A stretch of DNA of 64,000 bases from Lepidodermella squamata (Eukaryota; Animalia; Gastrotricha): the NCBI GenBank assembly GCA_047495785.1, contig JBLDXI010000073.1, positions 186,001 to 250,000 on the forward strand, given 5' to 3'. The notes under the pieces were generated by a model that was not told the DNA's origin, made no database searches, and saw nothing but the letters and a program-made list of their open reading frames with translations. Below are positions 3,047-61,726 of this stretch, in pieces (the stretch's first letter is position 1; each line of letters begins with the position of its first letter). The translations under genes and the position numbers were made by a program.

Positions 3047-3727
3047 TTACTGTGTTCATGTTATTAATTGATTCCACCTGTTACTAGCTTTCACCTCTGA
3101 GATGTTGTCATATTGACGAAATTAAAAGCGTTACGAATCGATCGCTCTCTTGGTTTAATTTGTTACGAAAAGATCACTAAATTAATTTGGAATATCAATT
3201 TATCAATTTATCAATATAAATAATTTTCAGATAATTAATTTGAGATAATTTTCAGGGACGAAGGGCGAAAAAACCAAATAATAAAATGGCGCGACCGGAT
3301 AAAGCCGGAGCCGTTCCTTGCCAGCCGCCAAAATGGCCGGCGGTAAAAAAAGTTTGTTTTAGGATTCTCCAGATTTCTGAAATTCAGCATTGCTAATTTT
3401 TCTTAGTTTCGAGAATTCGAGACGGCGTAAGTAAAGAGCATTTATTTGCGACAAATAACAACGTGACAATGGGAAGAAAACGGAGCGAACTAAACTAAAA
3501 TTAACGACTGTAAATAGTCAATTTTAGGTGGCTTTGGAACCCTCTTTTCCCGAAAAAAAATCGAAAAATTCTCACTTCGCTCGTTTCATGGGTTAAAAGC
3601 GTAGCAAATTGTCCCCCATGCTGAGTAAATATGACAGATTTCGCGAGCGAGCGTAGAGAGCGAGCGCAATTTTTGTGTTGCTCAATATTAGGGAAACACC
3701 AGCTCGAAAATCCTACTTCGCACACTG

Positions 3728-4169: not shown

Positions 4170-4520
4170 CTAGTTCAAAGTGTTGGCAAAAAGTTGAGCT
4201 ACAAGATCAGGAGTTGCATTAGTTATGATAATCAGCTTTGATTCTTTGCGTGAAGGCTCATTTGCCTATATACGATTGCTACCGTAGTTTTTCCGTAGCA
4301 CTACGGTAAAACTACGGAAAAACTACGGCAAGTACTACGGTATGACTACGGTAAAAAAAACATAATCAAAATACGTACGAGATGCCTTGAAAATATAGTT
4401 ACCAAACTATTTTCATTTAGAGACGTCACTGTCTCGTCGTGGAGAAAGGTCGAAAACTTCACTGAAGTGGTAGGGCAGTTTAAGGAAAAATCTCACGGAT
4501 AAGTCGAAGAGCTCTGTTTT

Positions 4521-6511
4521 GGCGTTTTTGACGCGTCATAGCCGCTAAACCCTGGGCCCCGCGGGCTTGAAATCTTTCGGGGTTACAGAACCGACGGCCC
4601 TCTATTCGACTGTCATGGTTAAAACCCGAAGGAAAGGTTCCCTGGCATTGAAAACTGGCCGCAAAGTCAGCCCAAAATGCGAGCAATCGCGAAAGTTTGG
4701 CGTTTTTGACGCGTCATAACCGCTGAACCCTGGGCTCCGCGGGCTTGAAATCTTTCGGGGTTACAGAACCGAGGGCCCTCTATTCGACTGTCATGGTTAA
4801 AACCCGATGGAAAAGTTCCCCGGCATTGAAAACTGGCCGCAAAACACCCCTGAAAACACAGTACTTTTCAAGCCATTGAGCCAAATGGGCGTTTTTGACG
4901 CGTCATAACCGCTGAACCCTGGGCTCCGCGGGCTTGAAATCTTTCGGGGTTACAGAACCGACGGCCCTCTATTTGACTGTCATGGATAAAACCCTGAAGG
5001 AAAGGTTCCCTGGCATTGAAAACTGGCCGCAAAGTCAGCCCAAAATGCGAGCAATCGCGAAAGTTTGGCGTTTTTGACGCGTCATAGCCGCTAAACCGTG
5101 GGCTCCGCGGGCTTGAAATCTTTCGGGGTTACAGAATCGAGGGCCCTCTATTCGACTGTCATGGTTAAAACCCGAAGGAAAAGTTCCCCGGCATTGAAAA
5201 CTGGCCGCAAAACACCCCTGAAAACACAGTACTTTTCAAGCCATTGAGCCAAATGGGCGTTATTGACGCGTCATAACCGCTGAACCCTGGGCTCCGCGGG
5301 CTTGAAATCTTTCGGGGTTACAGAACCGACGGCCCTCTATTTGACTGTCATGGATAAAACCCTGAAGGAAAGGTTCCCTGGCATTGAAAACTGGCCGCAA
5401 AGTCAGCCCAAAATGCGAGCAATCGCGAAAGTTTGGCGTTTTTGACGCGTCATAGCCGCTAAACCGTGGGCTCCGCGGGCTTGAAATCTTTCGGGGTTAC
5501 AGAATCGAGGGCCCTCTATTCGACTGTCATGGTTAAAACCCGAAGGAAAAGTTCCCCGGCATTGAAAACTGGCCGCAAAACACCCCTGAAAACACAGTAC
5601 TTTTCAAGCCATTGAGCCAAATGGGCGTTTTTGACGCGCAATAACCGCTGAACCCTGGGCCCCGCGGGCTTGAAATCTTTCGGGGTTACAGAACCGACGG
5701 CCCTCTATTCGACTGTCATGGTTAAAACCCGAAGGAAAGGTTCCCTGGCATTGAAAACTGGCCGCAAAGTCAGCCCAAAATGCGAGCAATCGCGAAAGTT
5801 TGGCGTTTTTGACGCGTCATAACCGCTGAACCCTGGGCTCCGCGGGCTTGAAATCTTTCGGGGTTACAGAACCGAGGGCCCTCTATTCGACTGTCATGGT
5901 TAAAACCCGAAGGAAAAGTTCCCTGGCATTGAAAACTGGCCGCAAAGTCAGCCCAAAATGCGAGCAATCGCGAAAGTTTGTCGTTTTTGACGCGTCATAA
6001 CCGCTGAACCGTGGGCTCCGCGGGCTTGAAATCTTTCGGGGTTACAGAACCGAGGGCCCTCTATTCGACTGTCATGGTTAAAACCCGAAGGAAAAGTTCC
6101 CCGGCATTGAAAACTGGCCGCAAAACACCCCTGAAAACACAGTACTTTTCAAGCCATTGAGCGAAATGGGCGTTTTTGACGCGTCATAACCGCTGAACCC
6201 TGGGCTCCGCGGGCTTGAAATCTTTCGGGGTTACAGAACCGACGGCCCTCTATTCGACTGTCATGGTTAAAACCCGAAGGAAAGGTTCCCTGGCATTGAA
6301 AACTGGCCGCAAAGTCAGCCCAAAATGCGAGCAATCGCGAAAGTTTGGCTTTTTTGACGCGTCATAACCGCTAAACCGTGGGCCCCCGCAGGCTTGCAAT
6401 CTTTCGGGGTTATAGAATCGAGGGCCCTCTATTCGACTGTCATGGTTAAAACCCGAAGGAAAAGTTCCCCGGCATTGAAAACTGGCCGCAAAACACCCCT
6501 GAAAACACAGT
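4521..6511. repeat. Tandem satellite: 11 monomers of 178-179 bp (A) and 189 bp (B), order ABABABAABAB
   Basis: Monomer starts at 4521, 4699, 4888, 5067, 5256, 5435, 5624, 5802, 5980, 6169 and 6347. A shared ~143-bp core carries one of two alternative tails. Confidence 0.95.
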
Positions 6512-45967: not shown

Positions 45968-46573
45968 ATGCAAGAACAGAGGGGACAATCTCATCTTTTT
46001 CCCTCAACATGTTGGTTGCGCCTATTCTCGGCTTCTCTAGCAGCATTGCTGGCAAGCCAAGTTCACTTCTCCTCGGCAGATGTTAAGCAATGCTACCTGT
46101 GCATTCCAAGCGAGACTACGGACTGCGGAAATCTGACCAACTTCGAGGTGTTCAACTGCACGGCGAATTATAACCATGGATGTATATTTATTGACAGTCA
46201 ATTGTGAGAATTCGAAGGTTTTCTGGCTCAATTCGCAATTCGGACTGATTTCAGAGAAACTGGCATACGCGGTTGCATCGATGAGAAAGGCTGCATTTCA
46301 AGTCAATTTGTGACTTGCTGCACAGAAGAGCTGTGCAACAACCAAACAGTTACGCCGCTTCCGACTACGAAGAAAATGGCGGCTCCATTGGAACCCAGTC
46401 TGGAAGATCCAAAACCATCTGGCGAGGGGCTCTCAGGCAATACTATCGCCGGGGTAGTTGCTGGCGCGGTAATAGCGACAGCAGTATTGGTTGGTAGTGC
46501 TTATTCCATCAAGAGATCGCGCAGAAAAAAATTGACAAACATCATCGGAAACGATGATGGAGCTAAATGCTAA
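45968..46573 (+). CDS. Ly6/uPAR (three-finger) single-pass membrane protein 1 (2 exons)
   Basis: Signal peptide, KQCYLC...RGC...CCTEELCN, a Pro/Thr stalk, TM and a basic stop-transfer. Confidence 0.85.
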
Positions 46574-47774
46574 ATACATGAGCAGCTTTGTTTTTGTTGT
46601 GCAACGCAAACTATACAAGTTTTCATTATATTTGATTCTAGTACAGGATTACAGTATGCTCCATAGGCCCATAATCGAGGATTTACTGTGGATAGTGGAT
46701 GGTCTTGTGATATCTCGTCACAATTTTGGATTCCGTAGCGCTTACTGATAGTTGCAAGAATTTGAAAATTAAGGAATGCTCAACGGTGTTGAGGGCAGAA
46801 ATCGAGTTTTTGCCGGAAACATATGTTTAGCATTACTGTTGGTTAGTTCGTTTTTTTCCGAAGAAAAACCCAATTTCCGCTCGAAACCTGGATAAAGTGC
46901 CTAATGACTCATGCCCATGGTGTTCATGTTTCATATATCTGATTGAGAAGAACTATGCAGGGATATTCTGGCGTTCCAAAAAACGTAGGATTTGCTCGCA
47001 TCTTGGTGAGATCTTGGACGATGAGTCTTTATTTTAACACTGACGATGAAGTTAGCAGACGTTGCTGCTCCGTATGTTGCCATTTTATTAATTATCAATA
47101 CATAGCTTGATTCAAGTCTGTCAGTCCGAAACTAGTTTTCGCCTAAGTCAGAGCGCGCGTAAGAGTTGATAATTGATAATTAATTAAATGATTATAATTG
47201 TATTCGCGATAATCGATAGGTAACCAAATTAAATTGATGCTGAAAAAACTGTTTTTACATGTTATCGTCGATATATCAAGTCTGAAACAGTGCCGCAAGG
47301 TTTTTAAAAGACCTTTAGGGTGCGGGGCGGCGGTGAGAGGGGCGCGCCTGGCACCATTACAGGGTGTGTACAAGAATCAGCGATTTAGCCTTTAAAGTCG
47401 GCCTCCTAACTCCTAAGACGGTTACTTAAAACTCGATCTCTTGAGGAGGAATCATGTTCCCTCCTCATTAGCCATGCTACGCTTGAAAGGCGACGAGCGT
47501 CGGCTCTTGAGGAGCGTTCGCGCAATATAAACTTACCTCCTAGGATTTACCTGTACTTGCATAGCACAAGTACAAGGCACAGCAAAAAACCTTGCACACA
47601 AACTTTCGCACAATCGCAATTTTTTAGCTTAGTTTTGAGTTGGAGTGATTCATATACTGATGTTATCTGTCACACACCCACACATATAAAAAAATTCGCA
47701 GCTTGTGCGTGGGCAAGAGGAAGGCTAGAAAAAAAAATCTTATCAGCTATCCTAATCCCCTCACCATCTGTTCT

Positions 47775-48655
47775 ATGCTAAACCTAAAACCCATGATTGC
47801 TATGGCTGTACTGCTGACGGTTGAAAGCCATATTCGGTTTTCAACTGCCATGGTTAAGCAGTGCTTCAAGTGCATTCCAACCGAGACTACCAATTGCGGA
47901 GATCCCAACAACCTCGAGGTGTTCGACTGCCCATCGGGTTACAATTATGGGTGTATCCACTTCGAAAGCGAACTGTGAGCATTTTACGGGTTTAACCAAC
48001 ACATTAAACATTAATTAACCTTGCGAGCGAAGCGAGTTTTAGCTGGCGTTATTTTTCCATAATTGTGTCTGAAAATAGACTAAAATAGCTTTAAAAGTGG
48101 GCTTTTACTTTGAAGTTTGAAACAAACTGAGTGATTCTCGTTGCGACCCTCGCGACCCCACGACCCCAAAAACCTTCCGCGACCCTTTTTAAAATCGTCC
48201 GCGACCCCAAAAAAGGCCGCGACCCCACTTTCAAGAATGACTGGTTTATATACTTACTTTTTACTTTTGTGATTCGCTTTGCTTTCAGGGAAGCCGGTAT
48301 GCGTGGTTGCATGGATAAAAGTGGTTGTAGAGCAAATCAATTTGGACATTGCTGCACAGAAGACCTATGCAACAACCAAACAGTAACGCCACTGCCGACT
48401 ACAACTGTGACGGAGATAAATACCAGTCCAATGGAGCCCAGTTGGAATGACTTCAATGCGTCCGATGATCTAGCTTTCTTTCTTACTGCTTTATTTTTGT
48501 GTGGCCTGCTAATAGCTGGTGTTTTCAGGATGCACTATCATGTGCAAAAGAAAAATAAGACTTTGGAAAGTGAGACATTCCGTATTTTAATCGACAGTAG
48601 TCCGACTTCGCCCCGCTCTCAGGGGGATAAATCGGAATTTTTGAGCCTACAATGA
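47775..48655 (+). CDS. Ly6/uPAR single-pass membrane protein 2 (2 exons)
   Basis: KQCFKC...|EAGMRGC...CCTEDLCN, TM LAFFLTALFLCGLLIAGVF. Confidence 0.85.
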
Positions 48656-48923
48656 GCACACTACCCTTCCTCCAGTATTCGGAATACTGTTAATCCAGCT
48701 CTAAAATATATTTCATTCAAACTTCAAACTCAGCTATTCTTGTATCTGCTACCATTGAATTACGCAACAGAGCCCAATCAACAATAAAAAGTTGTTTATT
48801 TGCATAAACTATTTTCGTAATCGTTCAATTTTCATGTAAGCTAGTGGAATTATAATTTTAAAGTTACTTGCTCGCATCACCTTTTCTGCCATTGATAAGT
48901 GAGTCCGGCAAGGCATTTAGCAG

Positions 48924-49444
48924 TCAAACATTGTTATTGCTTGTCTTATCTTTTTCGGGTTGCATCTCAAGTTGTTTCACACGCTCCCACGTGAATTCCG
49001 CCTCATCGCGCCCAATATGGCCGTTTTTCGATAAATAGGGCGCTTCAGATCCAAGTCCCGAATGATGCAACCAGGGCGAAAGTCGAAATTACGGGTGATA
49101 ACACTCCGCAAATCATCGGCAGGCAGATCACCATTCGCCGAGCCGTAATCGAAAACTGCGTTCCGGGTCAATGCCAGTTTCCGCATCGCTGTAGCCAACG
49201 CCTCGAATGACGTCACGCACCACCGCGTCGATGTTGACGCAATCAGCGGCGATTGAGGTGAATTCGCCGGAGACGTAGACCTCATCGGACTTGACAGCGC
49301 ATTCGCGACTTTGACTTCAGCATCCACGGCGAGGAAAGCATCGACTATGTCGTCACTGATCTGATCACAGAGCTTATCCGGATGACCTTCGCCAACTGAT
49401 TCGGAGGTGAATACAAACGAAGTTTGTCCAGCAGTTTCACACAT
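48924..49444 (-). pseudogene. MAT: S-adenosylmethionine synthetase (methionine adenosyltransferase), internally deleted and frameshifted
   Basis: [21 protein letters not shown]-terminus joined directly to the C-terminal [18 protein letters not shown]...GR..FTWE. The middle is missing and there are frameshifts. Confidence 0.92.
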
Positions 49445-49567
49445 GACACGATCAATTTTAACAAATTTTTATCTAACTAGGAAAAATAGAAAAGCAATTA
49501 TTCTCAAATTTTCCTTGTGTTCTGTTACAGATTTTCAAGTTGAAGGAAAATGAAGTTTAAGTTATTT

Positions 49568-50073
49568 TCAATCTTGCTGAGACCCGCCAAACCTCTCGGC
49601 CAGAGTTTTCCACTGTTCCTCTTCGATTCGCGGGAATAGCGGAACGGGTTCATTAATTTGTGGCCTTTCGGTAGAATTGGTTGGAAAGTAGGCGAAACGG
49701 CCTCTAAAGAAAGCCCAGTCTTCGAATCAGCGATTCCCAACTGTTGCCGCATTTTACCAGCAGTCTCCGGCATGTAGGGTTCAATAAAAGTAGACAAAAT
49801 CGCGACGACATGACACGCCATAGCGACGACACTTCCTTCCTTCGACGAAGCGATCTGCCAGGAAGCGGTCACAGTGGTCGCAAAACAACTGCTCGACCGA
49901 TGACGGACTTATCAACACAGCATTTTGAAGCCGCCAGAAAATGTTCTGGGTAATTTCAGTCTGCTGCGGGGTCGACGTTCGACCGAAATGATCAAAGCTG
50001 ATCTGAAACCAATCGTAGACAGTTCGGTGAATCTCGTGGTACTTGTCGCAAAGCTGCCGCGGCGTTGTGCCCT
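49568..50073 (-). pseudogene. MARS1: Cytosolic methionyl-tRNA synthetase, internally deleted fragment
   Basis: [13 protein letters not shown]...[16 protein letters not shown]...[15 protein letters not shown] joined to PYMPE...LPKGH...PLF.RIE...RFGG*. It retains an intron acceptor at 50074. Confidence 0.92.
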
Positions 50074-50137
50074 CTAAAATTCTAAAATTCATTTTGATGC
50101 TAGGGTGAATGAAAGGTCAAGTCAGATTTGAGGTTTA

Positions 50138-51701
50138 TCACTCGGTACCAACAGCTGCCAGAGGAATTTGCTCAGCTGCAGCTACTTCAGCAACCGCAGT
50201 TCCCCTTGCATCATGCTCGAGTCTGCTGTTGAGAACTCTGAAGTAGGGCCTGAATGTGAGGGCTAACGTAATGGCACCAGCCAACAAAGTACCCCCGGCG
50301 AATAGGCAACTGTACAGTGGTGAAATGTTGTTCAACATAGCTGAATAAATTTGGTTTAAATCGATGTGATATAAAACTGAAAAATGCTTACTAGACACGT
50401 AGAAGCCGATCCAAGCAAATATGCCATCGCTGACCAATTGCCAGCCGAACGAGGAATTCTTGATTTCGTTAGCTTCTTGCTCGTTCATAATTCCATCAGT
50501 TGGGTAGAAAAGATCGCCTAGATATGTGCTACGAATCGCCATGATTGGCGCAGAGATAAAGCCAAATAAAACAATGAAAAGGATGAAGGCAATGTCCCCG
50601 CTTGACATGTAGAGTGGGGAAAATGAAATATCGGCAGCAGATAGGATTTGCGACATGACGTAGATAGAATAGGAGGAAAAGAAAACTTTGCTATGCTTCG
50701 CCCATTTTGGCAACGAGCCAAGGCTCAAACGGCCGATGATATTTGATATTCCCCAGTAGAAAATGAGGTTTCTCTCTGTCGTGTCGCTGATGCCCATTTT
50801 AGGGTCTTTGGCCATCGTGTTGACAAGAACCGTTGCGACTGGATAGCCCAGAACTGCGAATGACGTTGAGACGAGGAAAGCGTAGAACGCCTTGTTTCTG
50901 CAGCTCCAAATTCTTCTGGTAAACTGGCCAGCTAATTTGTCTCTAAACCGTTGCAGTGCGGTCCGAGGGCGTTGCCCGGCTGGCAGAGGGTCCTCTGGCA
51001 ACGGGTAGAACGTGAAGCTCAACGGGATGGTTACAGCGGCCATGATTGCGTAGAACATCATAACGCCTCGCCAACCGAAAGGCGTTGCCATAAGGAAGTA
51101 TTTGAACAGGAAACCGTACAGCAAAGCCCCGGCGGGAGATCCAGAAGTAGCGATTGAAGTAGTGATAGCCCTATGGATTCCTGCATCGCTCCCGTATTGA
51201 TCCGGTGCGCCAACGATCGAAGGACCAAACATCAGAGCACCGCCGATGCCTGAATTTAGGAATAAAGGAAAATGTTGGTTTTTTGAGATTTTCTGACCTG
51301 GTAGAATGCCGACGAATATTACATCAAGGTAGAATCCCCATTAGATCCATTGTCCGAGAAAGACAAGGGTAAAAACCTAGGACATGAAGCGAGGTTCCCA
51401 GAATGGAGACAGTTCTCAAGCCGAAAGCAGCGAGTACAGCCATCCCGATCGGAGCTAGATATCAATGCTTAAAACATGGATGGAAACAATTGTTAACCCT
51501 ACCAAAAAGTAGGTAACACGTTGCATAGAGGCCACCGATGAGCGAGATAGATTCGGTTGGAATATCAGGGTATTCCTTTTCTATTTCGAGCTTCAGCAAT
51601 CCGAAAGCATAGAAATGCCCGTCTACGACGATGCTCATGTAACAGGCTACGAATATGCCGAGAAATTGCTGAGCTCGCCTTGCATTACATTGAGTGGGCA
51701 T
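50138..51701 (-). pseudogene. SLC16/monocarboxylate-transporter-like MFS gene, probably inactivated
   Basis: DGHFYAFGLL, FGWRG and NIIGRL..G MFS motifs over 4 exons. Exon 2 (~51298-51454) needs a frameshift and contains TAA in the homologous frame. Confidence 0.7.
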
Positions 51702-52692
51702 TTTGCTGTTCGCAGTTTTTGTTGGCTATAATACTTATACGCAGAAACGGGAGAATGAGCGGTAGCTGCGATGGTCTATAATCCGATATTCAATTGCGTG
51801 ATTCATCTGATGTTTTGCGTGTTTAATCATGGCGGCAGGTGGATTAATGCCGCTTGCCATGCTGCAACACGTTTTCCAAATGCGGCAAGTTTGTATACAG
51901 CCGACAATAGTTCTATTTTTAGCACGCGGGAATCTTCGTTGACTTTTTTCCAAGTCGCCTGAATAGAGCTTCTGGGTCAAGATATTGCTATTGATTCCCA
52001 GAGCTTTGAAAAAATGCGATTATTGTCGAAGATGGCGGGGGGACGGAAGGGGTGGGGTGGGGGGATTGTCCCTGCTTCGAGCCCGACGGGCTCGAAGCCT
52101 AACCACAGGGGGGACCCTTACGATTTTTTCCCTGGCCCCTACGGAAACTTGAGTGATGTAAGGGGGAGCCTTACCTATATCCCCCTTTCGGCAAAATGTC
52201 CATCTTCTACACTCTACACTGTTATTCAGCCTACATCAATGCCTCTATGCAGTAATATTAAACACTAAACTGTAAGATGAATCATCTTATTCATGACTAA
52301 AAAAGAATTTCTCGTGGTCCCTTGGACATTATGATTGGGCGTTGGGACGTACGTCCCACAAAGTTCAATGAGAATTCAGCATCTATGCTCCAGGATTGAC
52401 CAGGTTTAAGAAATTTTTTCAATTCTTCAAAACAATAATTTTTTACAGCTGGTGAGGACATAGCCGGATTTGCGCAAAATCAACTTGTGCTATTTTTACT
52501 CGTACAAAGGCAAAATTGCGAAAATCTTACTTGATCAAAGTACAACTTGTGCAAACATTATTTGCGCTGGGCTATTTGTTATTTAATACCAGATGGCCAT
52601 CTATTGCAGTGACTAATTTATTGACATTAACCACGAAAAGGCGAATCGCAAAACAATATAGAAAAAATTGAACTAAAATCGCATTTCATTCT

Positions 52693-53967
52693 TCATTTGA
52701 GGACGAATCTTCATATTCGCTCTCGCTTTCCTCGTCATGGCTGTCATCGTCCTCTTCGTCAGCGCTGAAAGTAGGACATTTGACCTGCCAGGTACGCATG
52801 TAACTAAGCAAAAAAAATTGCGCTCGCTCGCGATCCCTTCCACTCATGATTTGGCTGATATATTTCTGCGTATTATGCCAATCTCTCTTCGGTATTACAA
52901 GGCGAGCGTAGCGAGCTTTAGCTGACGCTATTTTTGTCTTACAGTTTGAGCTCAGTTAGCAAAAAATGCTTCAAATGTTAGCTGACCTGGATCGAATTTC
53001 GGGTTTTCGAATGGTACACGCTAATTGCAGGAGGCTCTTATGGTATTGTAGCTTATGGAATCACTCAAATCACTGTAAAACTTACTATGATTTCTAATAT
53101 GCATTATCGATTATCGAAAAAGTTTACGTGCTGGGCTAAGACAACCAGATTTTGCGACGATCGAATACAGTTTAATATAAGAATTATGATTGTATGCGAG
53201 CGAAGCGAGAAATTTTTGAGAATTCATCCGTCCAAGTGAAGATTTTCGCTTGAAAAAGTCACTGAAACCGTTAAAAAGGGATTCTCTCATCAAGAAACCC
53301 CTAACCCGCCAGGGATTTCAGCGTACCTGGCAGGTACAAATGGAGCCCAAACCTGCCAGGTACGCGTACCTGGCGCTATACTAGGCGTCCCTTGCGTACC
53401 TGGCACTACTTTCAGCGCTGCTCTTCGTCGTAGACAATTGCTTGCGCCTCCTCACCAGGTGATAAGTCGGAAGCCGGCAGCATCTCGCGAATTTCGCCCA
53501 AGGCTGAAACTGGAGTTGAGGCTGAAATTGGACCTCAGGCTGATGTGGATAACCGGGCTTAAAATTCATATTTCGCATCAACTCAAAATTCGGGGTCGGA
53601 GCAAAATGAAGCTGATTCTGAGCGCTAATCGGCGCATAAGAATGACCCTGTTGTTGCTGTTGCATGTAAAAAACTCGAGGCTGCTGCAGTTGCGTGAAAG
53701 AAGGTGTTTTAGGCCGCGCCGGTTGACTGACCTGCATGACTTGTTGAGCCGTAGGAGGCGGAGGAAGAAATGGGTCCTCTTCGGGCGGGGGCGCCGGTGC
53801 GGGAACCTTCAAAATCGTTGATCTTTTCTGTGGCAATTTCACAGCCTACGACGCGCCTTGCTTCGGCTCAGGCAGCGACTTTGGAGTAGTTTGCGGAAGC
53901 TGCGTCGGGTTTGATGGCACTGCTGGCATTGCGGCCGGTACTTTTGGGGGCCTACCATTGATTTGCC
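52693..53967 (-). pseudogene. Pro/Gln-rich exon with acidic C-terminus, disrupted
   Basis: In-frame TAG near 53845 and a frameshift near 53500. The hAT insertion splits the tail VYDEE|DDDSHDEESESEYEDSSSNEE*. Confidence 0.55.
52760..53420. mobile_element. 661-bp non-autonomous hAT element
   Basis: 15-bp TIR cagcgctgaaagtag, 8-bp TSD CTCTTCGT, subterminal cctgccaggtac repeats. Confidence 0.92.
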
Positions 53968-57194: not shown

Positions 57195-57764
57195 ATGGAT
57201 CGCTCAAAAATGGAATCGAATTCAAAAGCTTGGAGAAGAAGATTACCGCGTGTTTCCTTAGCAGTACTTTTGGTAGCAAGCCAAGTTCAGTCTTCAGCTG
57301 CAGTTGTTAAGCAGTGCTACCTGTGCATCCCAAGCGAAACTACATATTGCGGAGATGCGAAAAACTACGAAGTGTTCAACTGCCCTTCAAATTTCGACCA
57401 TGGGTGTATCTTCTTCGACAGTGAACTGTAAGAATTCGATGGCTTTATTTCTTTATTTCTTTAATTTATTAATTTTAGGGAAACCGGTATTCGAGGTTGT
57501 ATCGACGAAAGTGGCTGTATATCAAGTAAATTCGTGCATTGCTGCACGGAAGACCTGTGCAACAACCAAACAGTTACGCCACTAACGACAACAAGGAAGA
57601 TGCCGGATGGTACGAGTCCACGGGAGCCCAATCTGGAAAATCCAAAGCCTTCTGATGATGGGTTGCATGACATTGCTATCGTCGGTTTAGTTGTTGGTGT
57701 GTTAATAGCTGTGTTGTGTGGTGCATGTGTTCATTGCAACAGGAGACCACGAAGACAAAATTGA
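57195..57764 (+). CDS. Ly6/uPAR single-pass membrane protein 3 (closest to protein 1)
   Basis: ASQVQSSAAVVKQCYLCIPSETT...|ETGIRGC...CCTEDLCN, then TM. Confidence 0.85.
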
Positions 57765-61199: not shown

Positions 61200-61726
61200 A
61201 TGTCTCAACACATCATGAAGACTGCTCCTAAAGACCTGATTGCGACGCTGGTCGTTGCAATACTATTTCCGTTTCCAGCTTCAAGTGTTAAACAGTGCTA
61301 TAGATGCGTTCCAAGCGAGACTATCCATTGCGGGCATCTGGAAAACTTGGAGGTGTTCGACTGCCTTCCAAATAGCAATTACGCATGTCTTTATTTCGAA
61401 AGTCGACTGTAAGAATGTCATGGTCTACATTTTCTCAATTCGTGATTCCTATCGATTTTAGGCAAGGCGGTATACGCGGTTGCATCGATGAAAAAGGTTG
61501 CATGGCAGGTCGCTTAATTCACTGCTGTGCAGGAGAATTATGCAACAACCAAAGAGTTGTCTCAGTACGGACTACAAGAGATTTAAGGATCAGCACTGGT
61601 CTAGCTGCGCCAATTCCAACCAAGCTCGATGATGGGCTTCCAAGCGGTGCTATAGCCGGCATAGTTGCTGATGGGGTGGTAATGATGGCGGTGGTATCGG
61701 CCGCTGTCGTCTATTTCATCAGATGA
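61200..61726 (+). CDS. Ly6/uPAR membrane protein 4 (closest to protein 2); stop right after the hydrophobic segment
   Basis: KQCYRC...|QGGIRGC...CCAGELCN, ending VVYFIR*. Confidence 0.8.

Follow-up and report, generated by a model that had tools for sequence, protein, structure and literature searches.

The stretch of DNA analysed here, referred to as the window, covers 64,000 nucleotides of the gastrotrich Lepidodermella squamata (contig JBLDXI010000073.1, below C73, positions 186,001 to 250,000 of the forward strand). Between positions 48919 and 51701, its minus strand holds the remains of three genes in a row: a transporter resembling SLC16 proteins of the MFS type, a methionyl-tRNA synthetase (MetRS), and an S-adenosylmethionine synthetase (MAT). 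A first-pass annotation had described three same-strand genes of these kinds, and both Pfam and tblastn searches locate them there. Intact units lie on C11 (locus L027) and C3 (locus L026), and the parts of the window copy, listed from the 5′ to the 3′ end of the unit, are as follows (dN/dS being the ratio of nonsynonymous to synonymous substitution rates).

51504–51701, minus strand: transporter (SLC16-like MFS) exon 1, reading frame open; projected from the C11 gene model, with introns backed by cDNA joints
51302–51455, minus strand: transporter exon 2, 154 nt against 153 nt in C11 and C3, with a 1-nt insertion that shifts the frame into a stop
50392–51253, minus strand: transporter exon 3, 287 codons, open, about 89–90% amino-acid identity to C11; dN/dS against C11 0.088
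50138–50340, minus strand: transporter exon 4 and stop codon (50140–50138)
50076–50211, minus strand: zone of deletion junction 1, a break in blastn collinearity; about 0.5 kb gone relative to C11 (L027:3652–4164)
49826–50080, minus strand: MetRS fragment 1, residues 105–191 of the intact protein; 88.5% identity by tblastn, Pfam tRNA-synt_1g
49836–49839, minus strand: deletion junction 2; about 1.0 kb of MetRS gone (L027:4402–5401, residues ~186–518)
49568–49845, minus strand: MetRS fragment 2, residues 516–608, with one frameshift and the native stop (49570–49568); tblastn matches in two frames
49457–49567, minus strand: native MetRS–MAT spacer of 111 nt, with a pyrimidine tract and a TAG ending at 49477; aligned with C11 and C3
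49161–49456, minus strand: MAT fragment 1, residues 1–100, frameshift near 49304; tblastn, Pfam S-AdoMet_synt_N
49158–49161, minus strand: deletion junction 3; about 0.69 kb of MAT gone (L027:6066–6750, residues ~101–328)
48919–49158, minus strand: MAT fragment 2, residues ~329–408, frameshifted, and ~15 nt of 3′ flank; last stretch homologous to the intact unit

The window copy aligns collinearly with C11 and C3 at 82–88% DNA identity (blastn), and the alignment runs through the transporter introns and the MetRS–MAT spacer, broken by three deletion gaps. Such collinearity, introns and spacer included, identifies 48919–51701 as a pseudogenised, DNA-level duplicate of a ~5-kb unit of three genes, neither a retrocopy nor a chimera. 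The decay noted in the first pass is evident in the three deletions, the frameshifts, and the loss of the MAT start. Exons 1, 3, and 4 of the transporter are still open, and it is the frameshift in exon 2 that disables the gene. The first deletion takes the end of the transporter 3′ untranslated region (UTR), the following spacer, which holds the acceptor for MetRS, and the first 104 codons of MetRS; hence, the transporter–MetRS distance is indeed a shortened one, as had been suspected. The second deletion, of 1,003 bp, recurs in DNA run X2, one contig of which joins both flanks through the letters AGGAA; X2 may, however, be the source data of the assembly, in which case the joint is not independent support.

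Domain matches persist in the surviving open reading frames (ORFs): S-AdoMet_synt_N (2.4e-16) and S-AdoMet_synt_C (5.2e-9) in 48977–49444, tRNA-synt_1g (9e-23) in 49781–50092, and MFS_1 in 50138–51232 at 1e-7 and 31.7 bits, below the curated cut-off of 33.4. What remains of MetRS is residues 105–191 and 516–608 only, short of the full core, HIGH-type and KMSKS motifs, and anticodon-binding domain that define metG. Likewise, the three domains and the GEGHPDK, GAGDQG, and GGGAFSGKD motifs expected of metK are reduced to residues 1–100 and ~329–408, frameshifted and with the start lost.

The MetRS–MAT junction itself is better preserved. The MetRS stop at 49570–49568, the ATG at 49444–49442, and the tttttcctag that ends at 49477, 33 nt before that ATG, all lie where the first-pass annotation had placed them. 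Its spacing of about 123 bp, however, was measured to an ATG that does exist but is not the native one: alignment with C11 and C3 puts the native MAT start 12 nt upstream, at 49456–49454, where ATG has mutated to ATT, so that the real spacer is 111 nt. By the same token, the acceptor that had been proposed before MAT is a pyrimidine-TAG conserved in all three copies, but it stands 20 nt from the native start and not 33. The poly(A)-signal-like hexamer of this spacer reads AGGAAA in the window and AGTAAA in the intact copies.

In a six-frame search of all 151 contigs of the assembly (121 Mb), MetRS and MAT turned up side by side at four further places. On C11 and C3, the pair is intact and lies behind the same transporter, with MetRS–MAT spacers of 91 and 97 nt, respectively, and the junction in the window is thus native, as had been supposed. 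In the C11 unit, the transporter runs from an ATG at L027:2140 to a stop at 3702–3704 and contains three GT..AG introns of 56, 49, and 50 nt, which are spliced in cDNA contigs of run X1. A spacer of 143 nt separates it from MetRS (L027:3848–5674, 608 aa), which is followed after 91 nt by MAT (L027:5766–6992, 408 aa); both enzymes are intronless. The C11 MetRS scores 556 bits against TIGR00398 and 598 bits against NF001100 (cut-off 587), at the level of a metG equivalog, with PHLGN, KFSKS, and the zinc-knuckle cysteines readable. The C11 MAT scores 517 bits against TIGR01034 (metK; cut-off 309), and its GEGHPDK, GAGDQG, and GGGAFSGKD motifs are likewise readable.

The C3 unit shares the layout of C11, except that its MAT lacks the last ~63 residues, homology ending after residue 345 at GTATGT. 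Eight nucleotides before the end of this MAT ORF begins a class-C-receptor-like gene at L026:6480–9061 (C3:1399480–1402061), which encodes 817 aa with an ANF-receptor ligand-binding domain and a multi-helix tail. Because the C3 MAT is 95% identical to the C11 protein up to residue 345, the truncation looks recent or tolerated.

C11 and C3 diverge by about 12% over the three coding regions and about 16% over the whole unit, and their proteins are 93–95% identical. At a dS of about 0.6, dN/dS between them is 0.063 for MetRS, 0.045 for MAT, and 0.050 for the transporter; by these figures, all three genes of the intact units are under strong purifying selection. The ~4.97-kb unit marks the limits of homology between C3 and C11, and the flanking genes differ, so the two are neither alleles nor partners of a whole-genome duplication. 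All three genes of the unit are represented in the contigs of cDNA run X1.

At least three further remnants, more eroded than the window copy, lie on C73:

C73:252187–252804: eroded cassette remnant
C73:318000–318349: eroded cassette remnant
C73:324375–324747: eroded cassette remnant

Judged by these alignments, the unit has been block-copied to at least three genomic sites and several more times locally on C73, where all copies are dead. Beside each C73 remnant stand copies of the small cysteine-rich gene found next to the window copy; the dead cassette was thus re-duplicated locally together with its neighbours.

The transporter is the least conventional member of the unit. With the exons of spliced genes searched singly and without a joined model, exon 3 alone found no PDB chain and no relative in word searches, and none of the exons matched an NCBIfam family. 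An atlas search returned generic MFS clusters only, and an exhaustive search found just 21 relatives among 1.84 billion representatives, the best at 35–41% identity. A profile built from these relatives, however, matches MCT2/SLC16A7 (7BP3) at 2e-16 over nearly its full length and the bacterial SLC16 homologue SfMCT (6G9X) at 1e-6; on this profile, the SLC16 label of the first pass is fair, with membership distant. The arginine of transmembrane helix 8 (TM8) of MCT2 is conserved, whereas the D-x-x-x-R stretch of MCT2, which we take to be the TM8 charge pair, reads N-x-x-x-R in the transporter alignment. About six other loci in the genome carry transporter paralogues at 30–44% identity, none near MetRS or MAT, and the contigs of the three best metagenomic relatives hold no MetRS or MAT. 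The transporter is thus, by its relatives, a member of a small, divergent MFS family. That family and its unlinked paralogues and metagenomic relatives lend no support to the role in methionine uptake that the first-pass annotation had inferred for it.

The cassette MAT and MetRS are only 57–64% identical to any database protein, and word searches with either returned no relative above 64% identity. A metagenome scan found no close relative, with identities reaching no more than 58% against the cassette MetRS and about 63% against the housekeeping exons. In trees, the two other MATs of this genome and a single metagenomic sequence join the cassette MAT in one clade (support 100/99); for MetRS, the cassette protein clusters with its housekeeping counterpart (support 71/97). 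These placements indicate that the cassette enzymes are old, fast-evolving, lineage-specific paralogues and not foreign genes, the MetRS being a stripped-down cytoplasmic type and the MAT divergent. Horizontal transfer was considered and rejected, since both are of the animal cytoplasmic type and group with the genome's own paralogues. A third MAT paralogue is solitary and branches outside the cassette and the housekeeping pair:

L025 (C54:3483433–3484651): third MAT paralogue, no MetRS nearby

A 1.2-kb Joint Genome Institute (JGI) contig, Ga0484017_002055 (metagenome 3300043825, L113), whose first letters already fall within the gene, encodes a MAT very close to the housekeeping MAT in the tree. 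The sample behind that metagenome probably contained this animal or a close relative.

The housekeeping MAT and MetRS are themselves neighbours on one strand, on C21 and on C25; these copies are 97.7% identical and probably represent two haplotypes. They are the closest relatives of the cassette genes and, like them, belong to two enzyme families that adjoin on one strand, with no N-terminal glutathione S-transferase (GST)-like domain in either MetRS. The differences are considerable, however. The housekeeping pair has the opposite order (MAT then MetRS), a spacer of 764 bp with no clear acceptor, and no transporter upstream; introns are implied by tblastn hits in 4 segments for MetRS and 2–3 for MAT; the housekeeping MetRS carries a Lys-rich tail; and the proteins share only about 64–66% identity with those of the cassette. 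Just 1 of 80 metagenomic MetRS loci has a MAT nearby, so it is unlikely that the linkage arose twice by chance. Since the cassette enzymes are paralogues of genes that also adjoin, the two consumers of methionine probably inherited their linkage, the MetRS–MAT pair having probably been duplicated together and then rearranged.

Both spacers of the intact units follow one design: a stop codon, a short 3′ UTR with an AATAAA/AGTAAA-like hexamer, about 35–40 nt, a pyrimidine tract running to TAG/AC, a further 20–34 nt, and the ATG of the next gene. AGTAAA follows MetRS in both C11 and C3, and AATAAA follows the transporter in C3. The acceptors are TTAG/AC, 34 nt before the MetRS ATG, and GTAG/AC, 20 nt before the MAT ATG, and neither has any upstream exon with which it could pair. 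Spliced-leader operons are recognised by intercistronic spacers of up to about 150 nt and by an unpaired acceptor that follows an upstream poly(A) signal. Here, the spacers measure 143 nt and 91/97 nt in the intact units and 111 nt in the window, and all copies carry the pyrimidine tract and TAG/AC. In one X1 contig, the SMART template-switch oligo abuts L027:2088, which places a 5′ end of the transporter message, without a leader, 52 nt ahead of its ATG.

A candidate leader is also present. Ribosomal DNA (rDNA) was located via the Rfam 5.8S model, and its spacer contains a leader-like sequence ending CAG/GT behind a repeated promoter-like box, in 69 copies:

L112 (C2:2905400–2914100): rDNA unit of 8,460 bp, spacer at 4170–6322, which contains a 5S gene in the opposite orientation

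A 26-nt box (accacatgcac.tggtcattggcgac) occurs twice in the spacer, and the leader-like sequence follows its first copy; in most genomic copies, the donor of this sequence reads CAG/GC. A search of the available papers found none that reports spliced leaders in Gastrotricha as a finding.

The reading that we favour, with moderate confidence and as the most likely mechanism, is that the unit is a single transcription unit resolved by a spliced leader. RNA polymerase would start ~52 nt ahead of the ATG of the transporter, whose message, like that of MetRS, would then be cleaved and polyadenylated after the AATAAA- or AGTAAA-like signals; a spliced leader, joined at the conserved unpaired acceptors about 30 nt past the upstream poly(A) site, would free the messages of MetRS and MAT. 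Co-transcription is best supported, indirectly, by the strong constraint on MetRS and MAT in two genomic contexts where only 91–143 nt precede them. The arrangement resembles the SL2 operons of Caenorhabditis elegans as generally known: same-strand genes lie about 100 nt apart, a poly(A) signal and then an unpaired 3′ acceptor precede the next ORF, and a promoter-derived 5′ end is found on the first gene only. It differs from them in that the predicted distance between poly(A) site and acceptor is shorter (about 30 nt), in that leader addition and a polycistronic RNA are here predicted from the layout, and in that two of the three genes share one substrate, which is unusual for animal operons.

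The first-pass annotation had gone further and proposed a polycistronic unit coupling methionine uptake, translation, and methylation. The three-gene linkage and the spacer layout sustain part of that proposal; several observations weigh against a spliced-leader operon or against its functional reading. Among the listed rows of the X1 contigs, neither MetRS nor MAT carries a leader sequence, nor is an RNA contig listed that bridges either spacer. X1 consists of contigs only, however, which cannot show absence, and they do not reach the 5′ ends of MetRS or MAT. X1 depth suggests gaps at L027:3717–3839 and ~5717–5792. A reconstruction from depth and distance-to-end figures, which is indirect, has the MetRS contig apparently ending near L027:5716, ~42 nt past the stop; this end would lie ~9 nt beyond AGTAAA and ~29 nt short of the acceptor AG (L027:5744–5745), and coverage would resume inside MAT. 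Trans-splice acceptors also occur on monocistronic genes, so acceptors by themselves are no proof of co-transcription, and, of a trans-splicing system in this genome, a leader-like gene in the rDNA spacer was located. To these points may be added the truncated MAT of the C3 copy and the housekeeping pair, whose wide spacer and lack of a clear acceptor mean that adjacency of the two enzymes needs no operon. As for methionine uptake, nothing beyond the position of the transporter points to it, and no residue set is diagnostic of amino-acid transport in this family; a shared methionine function that includes the transporter is only a possibility.

In a less probable arrangement, the genes are tightly packed but would be transcribed independently, from compact promoters within the spacers. 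The acceptor-like motifs would then reflect leader addition to monocistronic messages or features of the 5′ UTR, and the linkage would stem from a compact genome and block duplication. Three points favour independent transcription: no bridging RNA was seen; the housekeeping genes, with 764 bp between MAT and MetRS, look separately transcribed; and the cassette copies share an ancestor, so that a layout common to them all is one observation and no more. The spacers themselves speak against it: in the intact copies, the 91–97 nt between MetRS and MAT are mostly accounted for by about 40 nt of 3′ UTR with its poly(A) signal and about 45 nt of pyrimidine tract, acceptor, and 5′ UTR, leaving almost no room for a promoter, in agreement with what the first pass had remarked of the window. 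Moreover, both downstream genes have remained under selection after the 5-kb block moved to new sites. We regard independent transcription as a possible but tentative alternative to the spliced-leader operon.

An improbable but more elaborate history is that the MetRS–MAT part began as a retrocopy of a spliced dicistronic transcript that had not been separated into its two messages. This retrocopy would have been fused behind the transporter gene, and the resulting self-sufficient, 5-kb, one-promoter 'methionine module', cut by leader addition, would now be spreading by DNA duplication. Such an origin would explain why both cassette enzymes are intronless beside a transporter with 3 introns, when introns are implied in the housekeeping genes, and the spacer layout is exactly intercistronic. 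Nonetheless, the 3′ boundary shows no poly(A) remnant or target-site duplication, the housekeeping locus today has the opposite gene order, so that no parent operon exists today, and introns could have been lost in other ways. If true, this history would make the cassette a functionally coherent, duplicating operon in an animal phylum in which operons are undescribed.

It is highly unlikely that the junction is a chimera produced by transposon capture or by template switching during retrocopying, or that the genes came from another organism: the repeats near the window copy (MITE-like, ~190 bp, 52024–52213; ~660 bp, 52759–53420) and the dispersal of the unit over several sites might suggest as much, but the same junction occurs in intact, selected copies, the transporter keeps its introns, no terminal inverted or direct repeats bound the unit, the nearby repeats are missing from the C3 and C11 flanks, and trees place both enzymes with the genome's own paralogues among animal-type sequences. 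Transposon capture, the origin under which intact MetRS and MAT would have been expected to lie apart, was rejected specifically: the intact genes are linked, and the unit keeps its introns in the transporter, is free of terminal repeats, and does not end 3′ in a poly(A) tail, so that it lacks the marks of a processed retrocopy or a captured chimera.

Several other elements surround the window copy. Members of a family of small two-exon genes encode a signal peptide, cysteines in a Ly6/uPAR-like pattern that ends CCTE-LCNN, a stalk rich in Thr and Pro, and a membrane helix; these small genes have no Pfam match. Their copies recur along C73 together with the cassette remnants, and those located are the following:

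Window 45968–46573: Ly6/uPAR-like copy
Window 47703–48655: Ly6/uPAR-like copy
Window ~57261–57630: Ly6/uPAR-like copy
Window ~61287–61556: Ly6/uPAR-like copy
L030:5359–5676: Ly6/uPAR-like copy
L031:4912–5304: Ly6/uPAR-like copy

The shorter of the two repeats, which resembles a miniature inverted-repeat transposable element (MITE), lies just upstream of the 5′ homology boundary of the cassette and is present in at least 25 copies at 82–93% identity on many contigs. The longer repeat recurs almost complete on C64 and C74 (92%) and in part on several other contigs, and it overlaps the end of a Gln/Pro-rich ORF at 53381–53842.

Beyond the first-pass annotation, the copy census, the selection figures, the paralogy with the adjacent housekeeping pair, and the match of the transporter to an SLC16 profile are new here. 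The C73 remnants constitute a natural 'knock-out' series, in which a block has been duplicated repeatedly and most copies lost. Animal operons are generally said to group unrelated genes. Should the spliced-leader reading prove true, this locus would hold an operon that pairs two ATP-dependent consumers of methionine, is selected in two copies, and has been duplicated en bloc, which would be an uncommon instance of functional coupling; it would also offer a convenient test case for spliced-leader operons in Gastrotricha.

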